From the NCBI GenBank assembly GCA_964234715.1, contig OZ174279.1: a DNA stretch of 64,000 nucleotides, one strand, 5' to 3'. A program made the translations under genes and the position numbers. The stretch comes from Podarcis melisellensis. Its lineage: Eukaryota. Below the pieces are notes generated by a model. That model was not told the origin of the DNA. It was given only the letters and a program-made list of their open reading frames with translations, and made no database searches. This document shows positions 10,745-60,592 of the stretch, piece after piece. The first letter of the stretch is position 1. Each line of letters begins with the position of its first letter.

Positions 10745-12305
10745 ATAAACTAAAATACATGGCTAATTGAACATTTTTATTCATTTTTGGTTCATGAGAA
10801 GCTTTAGTCATTAGCAAATAATAGTGCAATAATATATTTTATGAATCGGTTTGATGATTACTCATGTAGTTTATAATTTATATAATTAATAATACTGATT
10901 TTTCAATAAGATATTGACAACCAGTCTGAGCCTCAAAAATTCAAGCTTCGATTCATCCATATTTTTGAACATCATCCATATTTTTGAACATTCTTCAATA
11001 TTTCCGTTATGAATGTGATCTGTTTTGTAAGAAGGCAGGATAAGTACTTGTGTCTCATAACCTTACTAAAGCTCCAAGAACTGTGCGCAACTTTTCAGGA
11101 ATTATTTTCCTTCCTGGTTTGTGTATCAACATGGTTGAAATAGTATCAGCGTGCTCAACAGAACCCTCCTCCTTTGCTTCCACATTTCCCATACTTGACT
11201 TCTTCCTAGCAAGGTTTTGCTTGGTAAAGACAAAACATTAGATCATGATTAGCTATCTTTGAAATAACTCCTGTGATGCGCATCGTCATGCCGGTTCTCG
11301 GCATTCTATTTGGGAATTTGTTAGTCGGTGCCGGGAAAAAAAGTCGGGTTGACAGCTAATAGATATCCCCACCATCAATTGTTTAGACATTTTTGTCTTT
11401 TGTGACATTGAGAAAAAGACAAGGAAGGGAATGGAAGCAACTAAAAAATGTCAAAAGATCAAAAAATCAATGGGCTGAAGGAATGTGATCTGTTTATCAG
11501 GGTGTAGCTGCTCTTTCTGTTTGCATTAAGTCCGAGTGAGTGTCTTTGGTAGCCAACTGAAGCTGCTTTCATTCACTCCCTAGGAGATGTAATACAAGCA
11601 TGAAAGTTACGATGTCTCACAAAGCAGACACAAGAACAAAAAAAAATTTCGTTAAATCAGCAGCTTGGTATTACGTGTGCGTGTTTCCCCCCACAGTTGT
11701 GTTAAGGCTGCTATCCTCCCCACAAATTAATTGTTGAGTACTGCATACGTTCCATTTTGGTTTTAAGTGTTTTAAGGTGAAGGGAAGATATTTTTAAGTT
11801 CTTGTTTTTGAAAACATCAATAAAATGAAATGGGTTTAATAGTTCAGTTAGTGAAGTTCAAGGAGATGATTGAAGACATGTGCTTTCAGGTTTTGACAGG
11901 TAGTATAAAGTCTTTGAGTGGACTTCTCCCTTTGCTTTAATGGAAGAGGAGTTGGGTTTGCTTTATCTGAGATGGGAAAAATGCAAATGGAAGGATTTCC
12001 CCCCCTAAAGTGTTTTACTGCTTGCTACTGTTTTAAAGACACTAGTTAGTCTAAAGCTGCAATGCCCATGATTCCTTCATTTCTCTAGATGTCGGTGTGT
12101 GTCCTTTCTCTCTTGCTCTCCTCCCCCCCCCTCAGTTCTATGCCAGCCTATAAGAACCGATGAGTAGACAAGGCAGTGGTCCAATCTGGTGGACAAATTT
12201 CTCATCCCTTCTAGTTTCTGTGTGATAGGAAGTATGGCAGGGGCTGCATATTTTATAAACTTTCTATTAAAGTTGTGGCATGTTATCATAAAAATGAATT
12301 ACGAT

Positions 12306-35599: not shown

Positions 35600-36845
35600 A
35601 TTACAACTATCACTTGGGTAGAGACACAGTGCTCCCGATGGCTAAAAGGGCTTAAGAATCACTCACTTCCTAGCTTCTCTCTCACAATTCAATGCCCTTC
35701 TTCCTTTGGCTATAACCATGGTTAAGGATTAGTGTGCACTGATTCCAACCAGGGCTAATACTAACTAGGGTTCCTTTCATGATAGCTTTAGTTTAGAACA
35801 TAATCTTTAACTATGCTTATGGCCATCAAGGGAGGATTCGCATGCATAAGTGGAGGGAGCATACAACCCTATGGACCACCACTGATCACTTAAATGAAAT
35901 CAGAAGCACTGTGTATGCCCAAACCTTTGCAACTGAGGATGCCTTTTCTACATAGAATAATGTGGATTAATGTAACCTTTCATACATATTTCTCTTGTAT
36001 GTACAATACAATATGGTTACTTGTGCTAGGAATATGTATTATTCTTTGTTAATCCAAGGATTTGTTTCTAGATTTAGTATCTTTTCTTAGTCATTAATGA
36101 AGTTAAATTTGCCATTCTATTCGCTAAATGTATTTTGGAACAGTGAAAAACTTTACTGTTTTGTACAGAAACAGAATGTGATCCATAGGAAAAGAGTAAT
36201 TAAAATAGTAATTAAAATAGCTAAGGGCTAATAATGTACATTAATTAAATGGATGACTACACCCCCAACTCCTCAGATATAAGTTCATTGTTTTGTTTCA
36301 TTTTCTCAGCACTCCATCCCCGCCCCCCGCCCCCAAACTTCCCTTTACCATCAAAATTAGAACAAATGTGGCTTATATAAACTCATAACAGGAACCTTCT
36401 GGAAACAGAAAGGCACTGCAGCCATATAAAATGGTTTATTTTAGAAAGTACCTTTTTGAGTGACCTGAAGGTGTCTGCACAAAAGAGGCGACACACATGA
36501 TGGTACAAAATGAAAGCAAGGTGGGAGCCTCCATCCTTTTAAGACTTTGGGAGAACAAAGTCCTGCACGGTCTTTGACTGTGGGGAAGAAAACAGATCAA
36601 ATGTCCTACTTCTCTAGCTGAGTCTCATTTGCTTACTGTACTAAGTAGGACGCTCTGGGGACGATAGGTGAAGGCAGCAGGCCATGTCTTGAGAATAGGA
36701 AGTAGAGTTATGAAAGGCAGAAAGTGTGGTACTCATGGTGTAGAAATTTGTATGACTTTCTGCCTCCTTTTTCTTTTCTTTTTTAATCCCCCTTTTCCCC
36801 CTGCCCTGACCCACTTTCATGATGCTTCCTTTTCCTCTTCCCTAG

Positions 36846-36948
36846 GAATTCCACGGCCTCCGCACCCTCCAGATATATCTCCTTATTATCCACTATCACC
36901 GGGCACTGTAGGGCAAATCCCCCATCCGCTAGGATGGTTAGTACCACA
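36846..36948 (+). CDS. TCF7L2: TCF7L2 exon 7 (103 nt): [35 protein letters not shown]; alternative donor after 36936 removes LVPQ
   Basis: Acceptor cttccctag|GA, donors TG|gttagt (36937) and CA|gtaagg (36949). Peptide visible in ORF 36668..36952. Confidence 0.97.
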
Positions 36949-37610: not shown

Positions 37611-39642
37611 CAGTAGGGAGCTCATGGGGAGAACCTAATTTCAAAATGTGTAATAACAACAAGAGGGAAGAAGAGTTCTAATGTGTAGGCAGTATTTTTG
37701 CAATGTCTAATGAATAGGTGCAGTAATGGTCTTACTAATCTGAAAATTAAAATTAAAAGAGGCAAAATTTTAAAACAATGCTTTAAAAAAATGTGTTGTG
37801 GCATGTGATTTTCCTCAAACATTTTGATTACTTGTCTTCTTCAGGGACAAGCAAATCTTGCGCAGTCCTGTTCCACTGCACTAGATGAAACAATTGATTG
37901 CAACGTGCTCTAAATTAATAGTTGTAATAAGCCACAGTAATAAGATTGTGTGATTTACATGAGTCTGAATATGACAATTAGTCAAAATGCATTAGATGCA
38001 AAAAAGTACATTGATGATTTTGAGTATTAACTTGAACCAGACTCTCTCTCTCTCTCTCTCTCTCATTTCCCCCCTGATTTGTGGTGTTGTCCCCTCCTTT
38101 CCTTCTGTTTGGCTTTATTAATCTAATTTTAGCTTCAAATAATTTCCTTTATTATGTAACCCATTCTAAGTAGCAGGTTCCCTATGTCCCTATGTTCCCT
38201 ATATGGGAGAAAGGTTGTTTGCACTGAAAAAATATCAGCCTAGTACTATCGCTATACTACTATACTGTAGTATATACAGTTCAAATATACTTCCAGAATT
38301 GGAACCTGTGGTCTTTTATGTGGCCACCTGGAAACAGTGGTTCCTTTTACAGGTGGTACACTATTCTATTCATTTTCCTGGTCCTATGGGCCTATTTCTT
38401 ATTTTTATAGACAAAATGTGTGATCCCTAGGGGGGAAACACTGCAGTTTTAGAAAACACATCCTGATTATGCTTCAGAAAGTTCACACTTCAAAGGGAGA
38501 AAATAATAGCAGGAAAATAGAATCACTAGCCTCTTGTTCTCCCTGTGATCCAAACAAACACCAGTATACCTTTGGTTTCTATATTGTAGTAGGACTTTTA
38601 CAATGTCTTCTCATTTGATGGGCTACCTACATATCTTCTGTATGCAGGAGTAGATTTTACAGAATTCATAATAAATAACTGTTAGGGTATTTCAAAGACA
38701 TTTTAATGTACAACTATCACCCCCCCTCTTTTCTTTGGAGAGATAACTTTTTTTGTACCCCATGCAACTTTTTGAAGAGCCAAAGAGCATAAACATCAAA
38801 TTCCTTTAAAAGATAGGACTGTCCACCTGGTATTTTTATTATTTTAACCATTTATGGGCTCTGCTCTGTATTAAGATGGTCTGTGGGTATATTTAGCAGA
38901 GTAACCTTTCAAGAAAAACTCACACCCCAAATAACAACTTACCCGTTCAGTGGATACATTTGAAAGACAGATGAAAAGGACCAGCCAACACAGACAAACC
39001 TCAATCAGAAAAAGTTGTGTAGCTTTCATGAGGATGCTGTTTTGCATGTTGCTGTATTTTTTAATTATTGTAATGAGGTATGATTGTCTATTGGTTACCC
39101 ACAATACTTCTTGNNNNNNNNNNNNNNNNNNNNNNNNNNNNNNNNNNNNNNNNNNNNNNNNNNNNNNNNNNNNNNNNNNNNNNNNNNNNNNNNNNNNNNN
39201 NNNNNNNNNNNNNNNNNNNNNNNNNNNNNNNNNNNNNNNNNNNNNNNNNNNNNNNNNNNNNNNNNNNNNNNNNNNNNNNNNNNNNNNNNNNNNNNNNNNN
39301 NNNNNNNNNNNNNNNNNNNNNNNNNNNNNNNNNNNNNNNNNNNNNNNNNNNNNNNNNNNNNNNNNNNNNNNNNNNNNNNNNNNNNNNNNNNNNNNNNNNN
39401 NNNNNNNNNNNNNNNNNNNNNNNNNNNNNNNNNNNNNNNNNNNNNNNNNNNNNNNNNNNNNNNNNNNNNNNNNNNNNNNNNNNNNNNNNNNNNTCCGTGC
39501 TGTACAATCCCCAAGATTTTTGTTCTGATCAAATGAGAATAAAGCTTACTGTGCAGAGAGAGAGAGAGAGAAATTTAAAATGCCAAAAATACATACCCCT
39601 GGTTTTTTTACTCATTCTTTCCCCCTCCCCCCATCTTTCTAG

Positions 39643-48284: not shown

Positions 48285-48444
48285 AAAACATCAGGACTCC
48301 AAAAAAGAAGAGGAGAAAAAGAAGCCACACATAAAGAAACCTCTTAATGCATTTATGTTGTATATGAAGGAAATGAGAGCAAAAGTTGTAGCAGAATGCA
48401 CATTGAAAGAGAGTGCAGCCATCAATCAAATCCTTGGTCGAAGG
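48285..48444 (+). CDS. TCF7L2: TCF7L2 exon 10 (160 nt), HMG box N-terminal part: [53 protein letters not shown]
   Basis: Acceptor catccag|A and donor AGG|gtaggt. Manual translation gives the canonical TCF/LEF HMG box. Confidence 0.98.
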
Positions 48445-49931
48445 GTAGGTAACTAGTCAGGATATGTATATGCAAGTTTGCATGTGGGATAGAATGAGAG
48501 TGTGATACATGTCTGAAATGAAAGGGCACAATCCACAATGTTATTTTAAGTGTGATTATGGCATTTGGCTGCCCAGTGGAACTTTCGAGCTTTCTGGTTG
48601 AATACTTGTGCTTTGAAACTTCCTTGCATTCTACTTACACAGACAAGGAAATAAAGTTACATTTTCACCAAATGCATGTGCACCTGCACAGCATAATCAT
48701 ATGCTACTTACTTTTATCCAGCAGATGCATTTCTTTTTCTGTAGATATGACCCCGCTTTGATGCCTTTTCAACCCCATCCACCTCTCCATCAGTGCTTGG
48801 GCATCACCATACCTTGGTTGCTCTGCCCCTTAATTCTGAGACATGTCTTAGGAACCCCAGCATTCTTACTTCTCTCTGTAAGCTATCTCTAAACACACCA
48901 CTGTAGCCTATTAGTAAAGAACTCTGTACTTAGAAAGCTGTAGAAGCTTTTACTTGAAGCTTGATTCTCCATTCTCTGGTTGTAGGAACCTTAAGTCTGG
49001 ATGTTGTATGAACTGTAGGCCTCTGTTCACGAGTCCCATGTGAAGCTATAGTAATTTATGTAACTGGTAGCAGAAAAATAATAGTAAAAATAAACTTCTT
49101 ACATATGGAAGGTATCTTAAAGCAGGCCTTCGCAACTTGTGGCAAAGCATAGTTCTGAAGACAGGTAGCAAATTCAAGATTTATTGACTTCCCAGCAAGC
49201 TACAGCTTGTAGGTTCTATTTTACTTGTTCTGTCACACATTGTGCAGGCCTGCCTTACAGGCATTAAAAATAGGTGTTTGATTAATGTATGTCATTATTA
49301 TTATGTGGAGAAGGCTGGCTTACCAGAGTGACAAATTGTAACAAGTGGGGAAGGGAGAGGCAAATTTAAAGTGTGGTCTACTTTATGGGCATTTCTTGCA
49401 TGTCTTGTTCAAATGAATGCTGGTTAAAGGGGAATAGCTGTTGGCGGCTGGTCCATCAGGGTGAGTGGGGCTCTGTCCCATCAAGACCTCACCTGCCTGC
49501 CTTCTTACTTACAACCATTCCTGGGATGGCACCACCGGTCATTTTCCTCCTCCTTAGTCTCAGTGCTGCCCTTTCACAACACAGCAAAGAGGATGTTGGC
49601 GACAAAGCTGGAATTAGTTGATTCTGCCTGTCATTGGCTCCTGCTTCTACTACTGTTGGTCTTCCAATGGGCACCATCTACCACTGGTAAAAGTCCTTGA
49701 AGAATTACACTATTCCGTTTTCAAAAGTGAAAGGCTCCATCGGTATAACCCAGCTTAAACTAACCTGGATAAAACAGAGTTCTTAATAATAAATAAATGA
49801 ATAGTCTGCATCAGTTGATATGCTTTAATTGGCTGTCATTTTCCAAAGTTTGAATGTGAATGCACATTGTACACACACTGTATTACTGACGTTCTGTTGC
49901 GCTTGTGGTTTTGTTTTCTTTCTCTCTGCAG

Positions 49932-50039
49932 TGGCATGCATTATCCAGAGAAGAACAAGCTAAATATTATGAACTAGCCAGAAAGGAACGACAGCTCCAC
50001 ATGCAGCTTTACCCCGGCTGGTCCGCACGGGATAACTAT
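49932..50039 (+). CDS. TCF7L2: TCF7L2 exon 11 (108 nt), HMG box C-terminal part: [36 protein letters not shown]
   Basis: Acceptor ctctctgcag|TGG and donor TAT|gtaggt, with a duplicate donor 12 nt downstream. Peptide is in ORF 49905..50102. Confidence 0.98.
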
Positions 50040-51675
50040 GTAGGTGGCTATGTAGGTGGAATTTTTTTCAGTAGTAGAGCTTGTAGACAAGTACTGCTGT
50101 AATCTGCTGAAGTACACCCACACACGGAAGACAAGCACTACCAATCCAGTAATTCTAGCGGATGTTTTGGTTTTGTCGCCAACCCATTTGGATACAATTG
50201 GCACCCATTCAACTGAGGTGTGTCAGTAGAGCTCTGAGGGGGGGCGGGGAAATCTGGCCATGTGTCTTCCATCAGGGCACCAGCTTTTGTGCAGTTTCCA
50301 AAAAAAGAAAATAATAAAACAAGAAAGAGCTCCCTCTCTATTATCACCCTCATCTCCTTCCCTTACCCCCCAAATTAGTGCCTTGTTGCATACCTGTGTG
50401 AGAGTATAGTGGAAAGTGGAAGAATGGCTTACCCTAGCTTCAGAGAAGGACTGGCAAAGACTTGTTGGAGGTCTTGCTCTCAAGTGGGGCTAAATAAATT
50501 ATTCCACCCTCTACTTTTTTATATTATTGTACTGTTGTCTGTCGTGGTCACAATTTTTTCATAAATGCTTTCAATTCATGATGTCTTTACCAAACATCTT
50601 GGTGCTAGCTATTGGTGAACTATTCCTGTGCAATTCTCATTTGCCACACTTTCTTCTATTGAGTTATTCTAACTGTGGCTGCTTGCTTTCAGAGATCAGT
50701 GTCTCGATTTAACAAGAGAGAGATGTGCATGGAAGCTGCCTTTTGCATGCATGACAAACCTTCCTTTGTGCTGGCAATGCAGATGCATTGTGAATGAGCA
50801 TTGGACACTAAAATGTTCATTCAAACCCTGATGGAGTGGCTGGCTTCATCTTTAGATTTGAAGGGGATGCAAACCTGCATAAATCTACCAATTAATACGC
50901 ATGACTGTTTGGTCACAGCTATGGCTGAATTGCAACCAAAATCCCATAGGCAGGAAATAAGCATAGCATGTACATTTAGAAGGAAGTAATAGCTCACGGA
51001 TAAGTATTTCCAAGTTTACAGATTGTACCTAATAGAAATTGGTAAAATCTCTAAAGCTTCCCAGACATAATTAATTAATTAATTAATCAATCACTGAAAT
51101 GCACCAATCATGTAAGGGAAAATTTAAATAGAGGCCAGATGTCATCAGTATCAAGACATTATTGCAAGATCACAAGTGGAAGGGGGGTAATCAATTTATT
51201 TCATTTAAAAACATTGCTCCTCTGCTTTTGCCACAGATACTTTTGAGCTGTTTCGCAGAATTAGAATAATATACAAGATGACATAAAATACACAGCCCTA
51301 ACATATTAGACCCTACCAAACAGATGTTTAAACCAAGTCTTGCAAGCACTATGGAAAGGTTACTACAAGTAGGCTTTGACAGACCTCCTGAGCAGCTGGT
51401 TCTACAAAGGCCTATAATTGAGAAGGGTGTGCTTTATATCTGGTAGGATGACCAGATCCTGTAGATTTAAGAGTTATATTGGAGAGGTTTCACCTTAACA
51501 TGAGAAGGAACATGAAATTATTTCTTCATACAGGTATAATAGGTACAGGATCCCTGACCTCCTTTGCCTCTGGTCCTTGTATTGTTCCTGCCAATCTTAC
51601 CTCTCTTATTGCAGACACTCTGATATGCATTATACTTATACAGTTTTGTTGAATCTGCTGTCTTGATTATTTCTT

Positions 51676-51758
51676 TAGACTGCAGTCCTATGCACACTTT
51701 CCTGGGAGTAAGCTCCATAGAACTCAGTGAGTCTTAGATCTAAGTGTGCATAGGACTA
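51676..51758. mobile_element. Short palindromic squamate repeat with perfect 16-bp arms
   Basis: AGTCCTATGCACACTT (51684-51699) and AAGTGTGCATAGGACT (51742-51757) are exact reverse complements. Confidence 0.8.
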
Positions 51759-53494
51759 AGTGTGTGCGTGCGTTAGTTTTGTTTTGTTTTGCAAAGGCAG
51801 GAATTTGTTCTTCTGTAAATTAGGTAACGTATGTTCTTATGCTGCTGCACATATTTGCATGCATAAGCCTATATAGCCTTACATGGAGAGGAGAGGCACA
51901 TTAATATGCTACCAAGCAACATTTTATTAATTCCATTTATTGAGAGAAATAAAGACAGCATCTTAGTTTAGTATTTTGCCACCTAAAGATGAAGTGTTGT
52001 TTAAAACTTATAATCAACATCTGTGGTATCAAAATCCTCACATAATCCTTCCCTAGTTCTTATTTCTTCACATGCATAAGAGAGTATCTGTATACCCTCT
52101 TTTGAGGTGATTTCCCTTACAACCCAGAAGCTGTCTCCGACCATTTTTGCCACCACCAAATTCATAGCCCACATTTTGTGCCATGAATGGAGTGGAATGA
52201 AGCTGTCAGACCACAGGGCCGATTCATTCCTGGTACTCTGCAGTCTGATTCCTCTTGGGAGTTCCTGGGGGAGTAGCGCTGGGATGTGCCGTAATGCTTG
52301 AAAGATTTCCAGGAAACATTTCCTCTGCTTTAGTGACTGTGTCACTGACAGATGGGCATGTACTGTGTCTTAAATGTTTAGGACCTTTACATTTGTCCTC
52401 AGCGTGTGAGCACTGAAAATCCCTTTCTTCTCAAGCTAAAAAGGACAGGATAAGAAAGCTGATACGTCCCCAGCAGCTTGAGGCTCTATCCCCACCTGAC
52501 CTTCAGGGGGAACCTTACTACAGTAGGAGAACTCAATAGCTTTGGATCACACAAGCACATGATCTACAAGGGTTTTACTTTTTTCTGCATAACACTCAGA
52601 ATTCTTGGAGTCTATCCTCTTCCACGTGCTTTCTTTGGACAACAGTCTTTCTACAGATATAGAAAGGAAATGAGGACTGCACTGTATGTAGTGACTAGAT
52701 GACCCTCTGTGTCCTTTTCATCTTGTATTTATGTCTCACACACATGATAGTGTCTGCCATACATAATGAAGTTTTGGAGGCCTCTGTGCACATATCTTAA
52801 TTTTTTCACAACTTCAAGCAAAATTAAATATCAGACGCTAAGTCCTTGGTTCCAAGTGTCCGGTCAAAATTTAAGTATTAAATTTAGGGTTCATATTTTT
52901 ATTTTTATTTAAGCAGCATGTCAACCAGGATAAGAATTTTGTATACTTGAAAAATATTTTTTAAAAACCACTCCCTGAAGACAGATTAAAAGTTGTTATA
53001 CAAAAGCATGAATTTTCATTTTAAAAATAATCTCAGAAGTTCAATTTCAGTCCCAGGATGGATGGATTCAGTTTACAATACCCTTGCTATTCAGTCTCCA
53101 TGGGACTACAAAAATTTATTTTGATGAGCAAGACACAAATGTACAGTACTAATAAATTGACAGCTGGCTCACACGTGACAATGGCCCTACCCAAGATCAC
53201 TTAGATCACCTAAGGTCTCACCACCAGCTCACATCTAATCTATGCTTATATAAATTTTCTTGTTTGTGGGAGCTGGCGCATCTCTGCAGGATGCGTATAT
53301 ATCAGAGGTCTAAGGTTTTTGAGCTTGTACCACTATGGAAATTGTAGCGGTTTCATATGCCACACACACATAGAAGCATCAGTTCACTGTGACATCACCT
53401 GAAGATGGCCTAGCTATAGTTACTTGAAATTTTAAATTAAAAGGTATAAGGTTAAATAAACAAATAAAGCAGTAAAACAACAGAGTAGAAAGAT

Positions 53495-53560
53495 TAGCCG
53501 CTCTGAGCCCGGCTTCAGCTGGGGAGGGCGGGATATAAATAAAATATTATTATTATTATT
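53495..53560 (+). mobile_element. 3' tail of a LINE/SINE (L2-like)
   Basis: agccgctctgagccc...gggagggcgggatataaataaa followed by (ATT)n. Confidence 0.6.
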
Positions 53561-53899
53561 ACTAAAGCTACTTACAAAAATCACAAAAATACCTAGAGAG
53601 CTATGGGTTCAGAGTGGAGAGCTCACTAAAAGTACCTGTTTCATCAGCGAAAAATAAAAATTCAGTGTTAGGAAATACTAAAGAAGGACTGAAATTATCA
53701 AATAAAAGTATGATCACTCTGAATACTGTGTACATTTCTGGTCCTCTCTCTCAAAGAGTATGCCAGGTTGCTGAAAGAGCAACAGTCTTTGGGGATTATT
53801 AGTTTGGAAAATACAAAACTAAGGAGGGATATAATAAGGATTTATTAAGCTATTTATTTTTATCAAGTGAATGATGAGGGAGAACAATAGAGTAGAGCT

Positions 53900-54215
53900 T
53901 AGCAGTGTAAGGTTTAGAAGTCAAAAAGGAAGCACTTAAACATGCAATGCCTTATTAACATTTATTATGGCGAGATATAATGTCTCTTAGCTTAGATTGA
54001 TTTTAATTAAGCAATAATTAGTCAATGGCTATTAGCCATGTCATAGCATCTCCATCTTCAGAGGCTCTAGGTCTCTGGTGACCAAACTCTGGGGACTAGC
54101 AGTGGAACAGAGTTTCTTGGTTTTAAGCCACCTAGAAGCATCCAACTGTCTGTTATTGGGGAATGAATATTACATGTAGGTAGATATTGGGCCGATCCAG
54201 TAAGACAATGCTTTT
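53900..54215 (+). mobile_element. Highly degenerate CR1 3' end
   Basis: tcaatggctattagccatg...ggccgatccagtaagac resembles 4307-4510. Confidence 0.45.
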
Positions 54216-56534
54216 GAATACCGTAAAATGTAGCAGTTTTGAGAGACAGCTACATATTTTCCATTCATTTTCAAGATACCATAGAACATGATATCATATG
54301 TTCCCATGCTGTCTGTGTCACATTTACTAATATTAGATTATGTGTTTTTATATTATAAAACTCCCTGTGATGCTCGGGTGAGGGGCAATGTATAAATTTA
54401 ATTATTATTAACACCAGTGATGAAGAACCTCTGGCCCATCACATGCTGTTGGTTTGCAGCGCCCATCATCCCTGACTATGAGCCAATACAGGCTTGGATT
54501 GACAATATGTAGAGAGCCACACATTCCCTATCCTTTCCTTAGGCACTGGAAATGTCTATATGGTGGCTCAGTAAACAAAAAGAGGTTTGCCAGTCCACCT
54601 AATTATAGCTGTTAGACATCATGTGTAGGAGCTTGTGAACGTTGCATATTCTATAGTGAAAAGTACACATCTCTTCCAGAATGCAAGGATTCTAATAGAA
54701 ACAAAACATCTTTATACTGTTTCTCTTCCCACAACATTGCCACTTATTTAATATTATGTACTGGGTTCAGAAACTTGTTTTTGAGGAAATATGGAAGGGC
54801 CTTTGTCAAGTTCATCTATATTAACACAGATTTTCTAGCTTGGTTTGAAAAGTCCACCAAACTATCTGAAGTGAAAAGATGCACTTGTCAGGTATTTTTG
54901 ATGGATTACTTTCGAAGGGGAGAATAGTTTTTTCTAAAATACTTATTACAGTGTCAGATTAAATGATAGGAATTTACTTTTCAACAAGCTATCTTGTTAT
55001 CTGATGGTAAAGGAAGTTGGTCAAGTAGAAACTTATAATTGCTTGACTTTTATGTGGGGAGGGGGAATTGAATTTCCCACCTCTTCCTCTAGAAGGATTA
55101 ATTCAGTTCTACCTGTTTTGCTCCAGTCCTTTTCATGCAAAATAATAAACTCTCCATGAAAGATGTTTACTAGTTCACTATCCTTGTCGCTTTTGTTGGT
55201 AAAATAAAATATATTTTATACCATAAATTTAAAACTGTTTCAATAATATTGCGTATTTTTGATCCTTAGTTATGCAGTACACCATTGAAATGTCTGAGTT
55301 GTTTTGGTCCCCTCTGTGGAATTATTTATGGAAAGGCTATGAAACATTAATCTTTGTGGATTTTGAGTATGGTAGTACTATATAGCTGAGATTCTAGTTC
55401 CAGTCTGCAAATCACCTTATATGTGGTAGAGATTAAGTTGAGGCTTAAGTTGGGTAATTACTCCGTTTCTGTAGTAGTGCCACAAAATTCCCAGCAGGTG
55501 CATTAAATCTGAACAAAACAAGCAAGCACAGACACAGCCTTCCATCAGCAAAAGTTCACCTGAACAAGACTTTATTTGTCACATCCAAATCGGCAGGGTA
55601 GCAGTTTACAACCAGAATGAGCAAGGAGGAACAAGTTCAAAGACCTTATGCCTGGAGACCTGCATGAGCTACATTTTCAAAAGGAACGTTCACATCTCCT
55701 CTTCTTACTGGTACATTCCAGGGAACATAAACATCATAGTGGACATGCTGAGTTGAAACCCAAAATGAATCGCTGAAGTGGGAACTAGACCAAGCTATTG
55801 AAGAGAAGACATCACAGATCTAGGAAAGCCTCTCGCCCACCTACCTTAGGGTTGTAGCCAAATCTTCACTAAGCCCAAAGCTTTCTCGTTCCGAGAGCAT
55901 GCTTTCAGTTTACCCGCTGATGAACAGAGATCTAGTCTCTGTTACTCCCTTGTGAATTTCCATTAATATCTCCTTATTAGAAGCAGAACATGCAAGTAAC
56001 CACCAGGCTAACCACACTATGCAGAGCCAATAAAGCAAGGTGAGACTGAGCAGCCTTTTAATGTTTGCTCAGCATTGCCAGTTCTGTTGTAGGGAAAGCA
56101 AATTTACTGAACATAGACACGAGCCCTATTCAGGCCTTACACTAATGAGGGAAAGTGGCAGGGCAGATGGGTGTGAGCATGCTAGCTTTACTTCACATAC
56201 ACCCACAAGGTTGCTCTCCATGACTAATTGCAGCAGGGAACTGGCTTCTGCTTGTCATAAAAGTGAGCTCTGCATCATGTAGGAATCCTAGCCAAGTGGG
56301 GGAAAACCTCCCTGCAGACCGTTGCAGCTCAGCTTGTGAGGGGCAATGGCAACAGTGATGGGATCGAGCCCAGCATGTTCACCCCCATCTTCCTTCTCAG
56401 GTGTTTTAATTTCCTTACTGGTATAATACCTGAATAGGACTGCTATTCTTTTCATTTCTTAGCGTATTAAAAATAAGAATGATGCTTCCTTAAGATTCAT
56501 GGGGAAGTTGAGCCTTATTTCTAATACTTACGTC

Positions 56535-56640
56535 TTTGTTTGTTTGTTTGTTTAAATTTATATACCCCCCTTCATCATAAGATCTCAGGGTGGTTTACAA
56601 AATAAAATACAAGATAAAAACACAAGTAAATAATTAAAAC
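56535..56640 (-). mobile_element. 3' tail of a retroposon (L2-like), minus strand
   Basis: (TTTG)n-taaatttatatacc...ttcatc...agatctcagggtggtttac; similar copy near 5320-5400. Confidence 0.55.
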
Positions 56641-57251
56641 TGTTGACAGGAAAAGGTTTCCTGCTGAATGCAAGTTTGCAATCCATTTTTAACTTTATTT
56701 GTTCATGAGATTTTGTTAGACATTGTAGAGCATATTTTGGGTACAATGTTTTCCCACCCATCCCCAGTCCCATTTGTTCTGACTGGATGAAGAGCAGAAG
56801 TATGTAATGGTAATTTATGTAACACAAACAGAGTCTTGATTGCTGGCCAGTTTTGGATTCTTTATGGGAAGTGTTGACATTAAATGCTCTGACTTGATTT
56901 TATCCAATAGTAGTCTATATCAGTAGTCTTCATCGCTTCAGATCCAAGACCCACCTTTAACCCAAACACGCATTTGGCGACTGATTTATTTTATCATACA
57001 TTTATGTGCTGCTCTTTGTACATGGTGTAAGTTATACTCTTAGGAGTTCTGAAGTGTCGCTATGACTAGAATGAAATGTTAAGTAGAAAGTGGGCAATTT
57101 GAGATGCTGAAAAGCGTTGTGTTGCCACACACATTGAAATGTTTTCAAATATGTACAATTCTAGCAAGCTTTGCAGAACATTTCTTTCCTCTTGCCTCTT
57201 TTTGAAAGTAGGTTCTGTAACAACCCTTTCATGTATTTGTGTTTCATTCAG

Positions 57252-57300
57252 GGCAAAAAGAAGAAAAGGAAAAGGGACAAACAGCCAGGAGAGACCAATG
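57252..57300 (+). CDS. TCF7L2: TCF7L2 exon 12 (49 nt), basic tail/NLS: GKKKKRKRDKQPGETN
   Basis: Acceptor tttcattcag|GGC and donor AATG|gtaagt; manual translation. Confidence 0.97.
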
Positions 57301-57831
57301 GTAAGTAACATGGAATGTTTTATGTATTCCTTAGTGGAACAATGAAGGCCATAAGTTACTAATACTGTGCATAAGAAGAAAGTTTGAAATCTCCCAACCT
57401 TCTTGCCACAGGGCCATTACTACATCCAGCTTTTTCCTGTTGGATTTTAAGTACAGTTAAATTCTTATTGCTCGCCTTTTAAAACTAGTAGCCACGTAAA
57501 TGCATGAATAGCATATTATAATGGTAGTTATGTTTGTCCTTAATAACTGCAGAGCTACTCACTGTAGAGCCATAGTTTGTTAATGCCTGTGCCATTATTA
57601 CCAAAGGTGTGCGTGAGAGAGAGTTTGGTATTAATCTGGGCTGTTTCTGTGTGAACTGATGCATGCCTTTACAGTGGTAAATTGCAGCCATTTTTTTTTA
57701 AAATTAAGGAGGTTTGCCATTCTTTCTAGAAAATTAGAAATACTGCATAGGCAATCTCATAGTCAATTTTGAAAAAGCCCTGATTAATTTTTTTCTTTGA
57801 AGCCTTTGTATAATTTGTTCTTTTTTTTCAG

Positions 57832-57882
57832 AACACAGCGAATGTTTCCTAAATCCTTGCCTTTCACTTCCTCCGATTACAG
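57832..57882 (+). CDS. TCF7L2: TCF7L2 alternative exon 13 (51 nt): EHSECFLNPCLSLPPIT
   Basis: Acceptor tttttttcag|AA and donor ACAG|gtgcta; symmetric phase-1 cassette with the recognised peptide. Confidence 0.95.
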
Positions 57883-58732: not shown

Positions 58733-59009
58733 AGTCCTTTCCAAAGGGATACTGCAGCTTTAATTGCAACAGCTAATTTTAAAAGTTTGATAGATGTGAC
58801 AATCACTATTTAAAGAAAATAAAACAATCAAAAGTTGATATTTTGCAGTTAATAATGNNNNNNNNNNNNNNNNNNNNNNNNNNNNNNNNNNNNNNNNNNN
58901 NNNNNNNNNNNNNNNNNNNNNNNNNNNNNNNNNNNNNNNNNNNNNNNNNNNNNNNNNNNNNNNNNNNNNNNNNNNNNNNNNNNNNNNNNNNNNNNTTGAC
59001 CTCATTCAG

Positions 59010-59082
59010 ACCTGAGCGCTCCTAAGAAATGCCGAGCGCGCTTTGGCCTTGATCAACAGAATAACTGGTGCGGCCCCTGCAG
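59010..59082 (+). CDS. TCF7L2: TCF7L2 alternative exon 14 (73 nt), C-clamp CRARF form: [24 protein letters not shown](R)
   Basis: Acceptor cattcag|AC and donor CAG|gtgtgt; manual translation. Confidence 0.96.
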
Positions 59083-59410
59083 GTGTGTATAGTCTCCCCC
59101 CCAACCCCGACTTGCTATGGCTGGTTTTGCAGCTGGTTTATTTGGTACTTCCCCCTTCCCCTCCCTCTCCTCCTGCTTTGTTGCTTTGTAGCTCTGTGTT
59201 GTGATCTAGAAGACACAAGGGAGTGGGACGCTGCCGTGAATGATCATCTCTTTCTGTTTAAAGGATTTCGCTCTCTTCCGCCGGCCCCCCCTCATTTTTG
59301 TTTCCTCCACCCACCTGCACACTGCCGCTAGCTGGAAAATTCCCACTGTAAGACAGCATCAGCCTAGGCTTGCACACACAATCCCACCCTCCTCTCTGGA
59401 AAGTTCCATA

Positions 59411-59465: not shown

Positions 59466-59723
59466 CACATTGCTAAACATCCTTTGATACCACAGTGCAG
59501 AGTTCAGCAGAGAAGACACAGGGCTAAGTGAAGAGAATGCACAGCAGGCTTAGGCATTGTAAGTGTGTGTTGCCTTGTGGAGATCCTCTTTCTTTCTTGC
59601 CCTTTGGTCTGCGAGATTGCCAAATGAACTGGGAGAAATGTTAGCTGTAGCTAAGATTTCACATCCAACTGAGCTCTATCCACCATTGTGTTGTATTTTT
59701 TTGTGTTTACCTTGTGCTAACAG

Positions 59724-59796
59724 ATGCAAATACTCCAAAGAAGTGTCGGGCATTGTTCGGGCTTGACCGACAGAGTTTATGGTGCAAACCGTGCAG
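59724..59796 (+). CDS. TCF7L2: TCF7L2 alternative exon 15 (73 nt), C-clamp CRALF form: [24 protein letters not shown](R)
   Basis: Acceptor gctaacag|AT and donor CAG|gtatac; same length and phase as exon 14. Confidence 0.96.
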
Positions 59797-60592
59797 GTAT
59801 ACTACCCATTAGGCCTTTGGGAACTAAAAGCATTCTGTCATCTTAGTATTAAATGTGTGGTTTATTTTTAACCCCTCCCCTTCCACTTCTCGCCTTCCTT
59901 GCTTCTACGACATTGATTGCTAATCAATTTTTGATCTTCAGAATTCTTTGCTAATTCAATGCAAATTTCTTTTTCTTCTTGACCAATAACCTCTCTTTTG
60001 GTAGTAGAACTGGGAGTTGGTATACACATCCCCAAGATGCAGAAACTAACATTTTCTTGGTCAAACAAGTGTGTTAAGTGGACATCCGTACAAGTGTCTA
60101 TAAGTGTATGCTCTCAGTCTCCAAAGGATATTTGCTGCACTGGTATTTTCACTGTGATGAAAGAGGATACAAATTAGAATTTCTGCTTGGATCTAAGCTA
60201 ATAATATATTGGGAGTCTATATAACAAATTCTTCTGTATACTTTTGAATCAATCTTGTGTGCTTATGAAAGCTCAACTAAAATTCATATTAGGCACATTC
60301 ATAAGGTGCCTGGCAAAAAATATTTGCAGTAGTCCATTTGTCTCTGGCTTGTTAAGTTGACATTTGCTTGGCAAGTTGTTTTGGGATTTTAATCAAATTA
60401 CAGGACATTGTTCTGCATTGTTCAGCTTAATGGCACCGAAGACCAAAACATTTGAAACAACCCATGTTCTACTGCAGGATAAATTCAGTATGCACTTGTT
60501 TCTTGGTGAAGGGAAGCAAACTATCTCTTGTTGAATTCTTTTTTCCCCTTAATATGGTTAAATTTGTTATTTCTCTGTTCTGATCCAAGCAG

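Follow-up and report, generated by a model that had tools for sequence, protein, structure and literature searches.

Introduction

TCF7L2 is a main nuclear effector of Wnt signalling, and few parts of the TCF/LEF family are conserved as strongly as its HMG box and basic tail. Variable splicing of the gene in mouse and human concerns exons 4, 7-9, and 13-16, with the HMG and basic-tail exons constitutive, and no splice variant at the HMG/basic-tail junction of mouse or human TCF7L2 is described in the surveys (PMC2847248; PMC12166992; PMC9303524). Within the same gene, the LVPQ and SxxSS/SFLSS motifs of exons 7-9 are a related case: these motifs of four to five residues come from alternative donors and acceptors and alter transcriptional properties (PMC2847248; PMC9303524). 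The known variable sites lie beside the co-repressor region and the C-terminal exons, whereas the site described below, at which the four residues VGGY could be added, falls at the junction of the HMG box and the basic tail.

Outside the family, the closest described system is WT1 +KTS/-KTS, where exon 9 ends in two donors separated by 9 nt; the pair occurs in all vertebrates, and its two products keep a fairly constant ratio near 1:1 (PMC11807054). The TCF7L2 pair resembles it in being an in-frame donor pair with a short predicted insert in the linker between DNA-contacting modules. It differs in that its two sites are exact duplicates and that its insert has four residues and lies between the HMG box and the basic tail; moreover, both WT1 junctions and their distinct functions have been shown by experiment, whereas the TCF7L2 pair is known from sequence, and its range is a squamate clade and not all vertebrates.

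More broadly, tandem alternative splice sites (TASS/TassDB2) are catalogued for shifts of 2-12 nt, and here too two GTs lie within 12 nt of each other at a shift that is a multiple of three. Most catalogued tandem donors are of the GYNNGY type, with a 4-nt shift and a weaker minor site, whereas the TCF7L2 pair is identical over 12 nt by duplication. In human tandem pairs most of the splicing usually falls to one site, the share of the minor site rises as the strengths equalise, and of two equally strong sites the upstream one does better (PMC8055015); the ratio in which the sites are used should follow their relative strength (PMC8055015; PMC2878309). A literature search returned no paper on a tandem donor site of the HMG exon in reptiles.

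The locus was analysed in a stretch of 64 kb from Podarcis melisellensis (the window), for which a preliminary description, made from the sequence, had proposed that a perfect 12-nt tandem duplication of the exon 11 donor could insert VGGY between the HMG box and the basic tail.

Results

TCF7L2 exons around the duplicated donor

Three TCF7L2 exons on the plus strand frame the donor, as follows.

48285..48444, plus strand: TCF7L2 exon 10 (17-exon numbering), N-terminal half of the HMG box (Pfam, splice sites)
49932..50039, plus strand: TCF7L2 exon 11, C-terminal half of the HMG box, ending ...WSARDNY (translation, Pfam)
57252..57300, plus strand: exon 12, coding the basic tail and NLS, GKKKKRKRDKQPGETN; its acceptor would serve both donors

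The Pfam HMG_box profile (PF00505) is split between the first two of these, with profile positions 1-38 on 48289-48444 (E 1.7e-10) and positions 39-69 on 49932-50039 (E 1.5e-6). The acceptor AG of exon 11 stands at 49930-49931, and exon 12 at 57252 is preceded by ...ttcattcag. Exon 12 supplies the basic tail/NLS GKKKKRKR directly after the HMG box, as in TCF/LEF proteins. A motif scan placed further TCF7L2 exons in order on the plus strand, including the EHSECFLNPCLSLPPIT exon and two alternative C-clamp exons (CRARF/CRALF), and identical C-terminal exon products are found in TCF7L2-named models of Anolis carolinensis and Podarcis muralis.

Several side observations were made on these downstream exons. 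The two alternative C-clamp exons, at 59000-59089 and 59651-59809, lie about 700 nt apart; a mutually exclusive pair of C-clamp exons is known for TCF7L2, and the pair in the window fits it. Read-through of the second C-clamp exon (CRYTTH, then a stop) gives the C-terminus of a gene model from Phrynosoma platyrhinos (P0173) that is taken up below. The alternative exon EHSECFLNPCLSLPPIT, at 57831-57881, follows the basic-tail exon after about 530 nt, and reading on from it gives GANVIFSHLK, the sequence in which a quail model ends (P0217, ...PPITGANVILSHLK); that model therefore looks like another donor read-through.

A perfect tandem duplication on the exon 11 donor

At the end of exon 11, CTATGTAGGTGG stands in two head-to-tail copies, at 50036-50047 and 50048-50059 on the plus strand, with no third copy within the 64-kb window. 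TRF returned a period of 12, 2.0 copies, and 100% matches for 50036-50059, and the repeat unit ends sharply, with no extension on either side. Through the GTs at 50040 and 50052, the repeat carries two donors, TAT/GTAGGTGG, that are identical from -4 to +8, in frame, and 12 nt apart. Both the exact count and TRF thus bear out the perfect duplication and the pair of in-frame donors that the preliminary description had reported. The features of the junction and of the intron start are the following.

50036..50047, plus strand: repeat copy 1, CTAT/GTAGGTGG; proximal (canonical) 5' splice site, GT at 50040-50041
50048..50059, plus strand: repeat copy 2, CTAT/GTAGGTGG; distal 5' splice site, GT at 50052-50053
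50040..50051, plus strand: optional 12-nt exon extension GTAGGTGGCTAT, coding VGGY, included only with the distal donor
50060..50069, plus strand: A2T7C U-rich tract directly 3' of the distal donor; ancestral downstream context of the single donor
50070..50086, plus strand: conserved intronic element AGTAGTAGAGCTTGTAG (cross-genome comparison)

Translation past the exon end at 50039 reads VGGYVGG. A pyrimidine- or U-rich run adjoins the last donor copy in all genomes compared, and the tract at 50060..50069 may be regarded as a candidate intronic enhancer of the TIA-1 type. Further into the intron, the block +33..+44 shows zero changes among the window, Phrynosoma (contig L013), and two further contigs (L001 and L012), and the TAG..GT core of the element at 50070-50086 is invariant in alignment A1, the single-copy amniote contigs included. 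As a side observation, this element, AGTAGTAGAGCTTGTAG, is a candidate splicing regulatory element for a weak TCF7L2 donor.

In 64 kb of random letters, a given 12-mer would be expected in tandem about 0.004 times. The window nevertheless has three perfect, non-simple tandem duplications of 10-20 nt, the donor repeat included; short duplications by slippage are no rarity in the genome, and what is unusual is the position of this one on a splice donor. The other two, AGTAATTAAAAT twice at 36195-36218 and a 19-mer twice at 10953-10990, both appear to be intronic, the former about 650 nt upstream of an exon near 36850. All 97 of the 97 sampled 31-mers from 49500-50500 were present in three runs of the best-matching sample, a match that is not independent support because this sample may be the source of the assembly.

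Spread and age of the duplication

Relatives were found through ORFs called across exon 11 (protein word searches) and through the contigs behind them. The Phrynosoma platyrhinos assembly GCA_020142125.1 (L013), which was searched by motif for the end of exon 11 and for the basic-tail exon and compared by local blastn with window positions 49400-57400 as the query, contains the same 24-mer followed by the same AATTTTTTTCAGTAGTAGAGCTTGTAG, with its basic-tail exon at 38053-38101; its identity with the window over alignable intron is only about 82%. The Anolis carolinensis protein XP_003230746.2 (P0126) reads from exon 11 straight into the intron and is almost the same as the window's own read-through. 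Diverged duplicates were present in three more contigs, reading GTAGGTTC-CTAT-GTAGGTGG in L001, GTAGGTTC-CTAT-GTTGGTGG in L012, and GTACGTGG-CTAT-GTAGGTGA in L002. Two copies 12 nt apart are accordingly found in six genomes (the window, Phrynosoma, Anolis at the protein level, L001, L012, and L002), among which exon differences range from 1 to 15 of 108 positions, all at third codon positions. A single copy of GTAGGTGG, followed by a pyrimidine-rich run, was found in a TCF7L2 model of the gray whale (P0172) and in the outgroup contigs L003-L011, for which the comparison covered the exon of 108 nt and about 360 nt surrounding the donor.

The alignment of orthologous intron starts across relatives, which the preliminary description had suggested, places the duplication in squamate lineages and the single copy in other amniotes, whale included, and so upholds the proposal that it is lineage specific. 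The distribution indicates that the duplication arose once, before anoles, horned lizards, and at least two deeper lineages diverged, and published squamate timescales would make it probably of the order of 100 million years old. Two further suggestions of the preliminary description fall on the same comparison: a polymorphism is contradicted by lineages that have the duplication in common while differing at up to 15 of 108 exon positions and at least about 18% of intron positions, and an assembly artefact by the identical 24-mer in the independent P. platyrhinos assembly and the diverged copies in three contigs.

Possible constraint on the second copy

Parsimony changes were counted per block in an alignment of five duplication-bearing genomes (window, L013, L001, L012, and L002). 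The proximal donor (+1..+8) has three changes and copy 2 (+9..+20) has two, whereas the next five 12-nt blocks have 14, 5, 18, 12, and 11 (Poisson P = 0.0005 for two or fewer changes where the mean is 12). When L002, which aligns poorly, is left out, copy 2 has one change and the later blocks average 6.1 (P = 0.016). Four single-copy genomes with a comparable exon divergence show no changes in their sole donor (+1..+8) and 12 at positions +9..+20, no fewer than in later blocks; the comparison of copy 2 with these positions gives a Fisher P of 0.024. These counts suggest that copy 2 is constrained, unlike the same positions where they are plain intron, and they are suggestive only, being drawn from five genomes and short blocks in an intron where +33..+44 is also conserved. 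The proximal donor, on small numbers, appears somewhat relaxed in the duplicated clade.

Donor strength in the window and its relatives

Donor strength was taken as the folding energy of positions -3..+8 against the U1 5' end, in kcal/mol. Both window donors come to -6.2 kcal/mol, which is weak against the -11.3 of the neighbouring upstream exon's donor, and since the copies are identical, a score computed from -3..+6 is bound to be the same for both. The values in the window and in three relatives are as follows.

Window: proximal -6.2, distal -6.2 kcal/mol; identical copies
L001: proximal -5.1, distal -6.2 kcal/mol
L002: proximal -2.3, distal -6.1 kcal/mol; proximal +4 G>C
L012: proximal -5.1, distal -4.1 kcal/mol; distal +3 A>T (GTTGGT)

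Across the tree, one core substitution has struck each of the two sites, and no genome lacks an intact ancestral core. Neither donor is uniquely protected, and the pattern of donor-core loss looks like partial redundancy. The distal donor, moreover, would be dispensable in at least one lineage, since the +3 A>T change in L012 should weaken the site.

A separate observation concerns the composition of the repeat. Each copy is itself a GYNNGY motif (GTAGGT), with extra GTs at 50044-50045 and 50056-50057, so that four GTs in 18 nt compete; the +4 and +16 sites (50044 and 50056) are frameshifting, and their U1 duplex energies (-5.7 and -6.0) are near those of the in-frame sites.

Public gene models at the junction

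Public annotation already contains the longer reading. The Phrynosoma platyrhinos model P0173 (GenBank JD844_006836), retrieved by exact look-up and with its sub-range 219-274, reads NY-VGGY-GKKKKRKRDKQPGETN, and on L013 this corresponds to exon 11 lengthened by 12 nt and spliced to the basic-tail exon, which is the distal-donor junction. The annotation was produced with MAKER/AUGUSTUS, using Trinity transcripts of eight tissues and A. carolinensis NCBI proteins as evidence (PMC8848323), and the anole read-through protein P0126 could alone have drawn the exon end of P0173 to the distal donor. The VGGY form is thus already public, as an evidence-guided prediction and not as proof of expression. 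The model is also flawed in other respects: one exon is skipped, the N-terminus is odd, and it ends in intron read-through.

The Podarcis muralis model (P0202) is canonical at the junction when read at the protein level. The Anolis protein P0126, searched with its region 91-130, was considered as evidence for a VGGY isoform and rejected, as it is an intron read-through past both donors and not a distal-donor splice. Word searches for NY-VG.Y-GKKKK found P0173 as the only instance among spliced fragments of 39-324 aa, which is a weak negative; the searches cover proteins in that length range, and full-length squamate TCF7L2 isoforms are longer. Exact protein look-ups of two window ORFs spanning the repeat gave no match.

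The linker between the HMG box and the basic tail

Among the proteins fetched, the spacer between ...DNY and the Lys/Arg run is a single G in 54 vertebrate-type sequences, whereas invertebrate TCFs have spacers of three to four residues (AQS, AQQG, GYGS, GYGT, ASHT, ALQV, and others); in P0173 it is VGGYG. The high conservation that the preliminary description had ascribed to this junction consequently stands for vertebrates, where NY-G-KKKK is fixed in TCF/LEF proteins apart from a fish-like ACNQQG, and does not extend to invertebrate TCFs with their spacers of three to four residues. The fish-like case was noted separately: P0157 (JGI, "transcription factor 7-like 2," 203 aa) reads NY-ACNQQ-GKKKKRKREK, with a five-residue insert at the same junction, and its codons ending in Q-Q would fit an upstream alternative acceptor. 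Length variation at the HMG/basic-tail junction may, on this example, occur elsewhere too.

The exon 11 product and tail align to residues 41-86 of LEF-1 on DNA (PDB 2LEF), the sole solved chain matched. LEF-1 in 2LEF has the HMG domain and basic tail without the longer linker predicted for the VGGY form. When P0173:219-274 was aligned to 2LEF, a four-residue gap opened at the end of the HMG box, adjoining the basic tail, and this places the VGGY insert between two DNA-contacting modules. The structure reads ...ARDNYGKKKKRKREK and the gap falls just before that Y, a placement equivalent to its neighbour because the insert itself ends in Y. Since invertebrate TCFs have three to four residues at this junction, a strong effect on DNA binding is not implied; altered binding by VGGY is possible, and a Gly-rich linker one residue longer than the invertebrate spacers would plausibly be tolerated.

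Discussion

A proposed tandem donor with both sites in use

The explanation that we favour, and to which we give about an even chance, is an old in-frame tandem donor with both sites in use. Under it, the 5' splice site of the HMG-box exon would have been duplicated in tandem, over 12 nt, once in an early squamate lineage, and the duplication would have been kept since. One weak donor, TAT/GTAGGTGG, would in this way have become a tandem pair in frame, 12 nt apart. U1 snRNP would be able to dock on either copy, and as the copies are only 12 nt apart, docking on the two would probably be mutually exclusive. A proximal splice would give the canonical protein, ...ARDNY/GKKKKRKR..., and a distal splice would lengthen the linker from the HMG box to the basic tail/NLS by VGGY. 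Both donors would be used, with the canonical form presumably at least as frequent, and the linker longer by four residues would be tolerated and not disruptive. What we infer in this explanation is that the distal donor is used, what share of transcripts it has, and how the protein is affected.

Possible, although we rate it at clearly less than an even chance, is that splicing uses the proximal donor only, with copy 2 an intronic passenger, no meaningful VGGY protein, and the Phrynosoma VGGY model an annotation artefact; in a variant of this, copy 2 would at most help the weak proximal donor, for example as an extra binding site for U1 or hnRNP. The 12 nt between the donors contain UAGG, an exonic silencer motif that would disfavour the longer exon, and the upstream copy retains the whole ancestral exon context. 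Equal-strength upstream tandem sites are favoured, with one site usually dominating by an order of magnitude (PMC8055015), and surveys of mouse and human list the exon pair as constitutive (PMC2847248). The weakened distal copy of L012 (GTTGGT) and the canonical Podarcis muralis model, at the protein level, point in the same direction, and P0173 may be explicable by the read-through protein P0126 that served as evidence for it. A passenger copy is harder to reconcile with the rate at which copy 2 changes, which is five to six times less than that of the following intron, at positions that are unconstrained in single-copy genomes. Over +1..+8 the proximal donor itself has changed three times and the single donor of the outgroups not at all, and in L002 its +4 G>C substitution leaves a U1 pairing of -2.3 against -6.1 for the distal site.

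An extension of the favoured explanation, in which the tandem donor would be a regulated switch of squamates, we consider unlikely. Donor choice would here depend on tissue or stage and yield TCF7L2 with a short linker or with one longer by four residues, DNA bending, DNA affinity, or use of the NLS would not be alike in the two, and the switch would have persisted for about 100 million years.

Still less likely is that the distal donor is the main or constitutive one, such that the standard TCF7L2 of this squamate clade would have a V-G-x-Y insert (VGGY, VGSY, or VRGY), copy 1 having become coding sequence. This would account for the fact that three of the four substituted positions of the 24-mer lie in copy 1, where all would be amino-acid changes (G>S, G>R) in a tolerant linker, and it would suit the better U1 pairing of the distal site in L001 and L002. 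Copy 2 also keeps the ancestral downstream context, with the U-rich tract from +9 onward, and P0173, the only spliced model from a duplication-bearing genome shown here, uses the distal donor. The distal copy of L012, however, bears the +3 A>T change, the Podarcis muralis model is canonical at the protein level, and copy 1 keeps its GT and a usable core in every lineage, which coding sequence would not need.

An artefact of assembly, or a polymorphism that is private to the sequenced individual or heterozygous in it, is exceedingly improbable and is refuted as an explanation of the feature, for although perfect short tandem repeats are typical of polishing errors or slippage alleles, the identical 24-mer stands in an independent Illumina/Dovetail assembly of another genus (L013), the Anolis carolinensis model shows the duplication at the protein level, diverged copies occur in three more contigs from unrelated runs, and all sampled words of the stretch were present in three runs, so that a duplication found in independent, distantly related genomes is neither an artefact nor a young polymorphism.

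Implications for squamate TCF7L2

Taken as a whole, the comparison of genomes identifies the feature as a lineage-specific, ancient, in-frame tandem donor that is not polymorphic. The duplicated TCF7L2 donor is in this sense a clean natural example of a splice-site duplication creating an alternative site. Public lizard annotations conflict at this position, one giving VGGY and one the canonical reading, in addition to read-through models, and comparative analyses of reptile TCF7L2 can for this reason be misled. If the use of both donors is true, squamates would have gained a TCF7L2 isoform axis that other vertebrates lack, at the junction of the HMG box and the basic tail; a regulated donor switch, if true, would be the TCF counterpart of WT1 +/-KTS.
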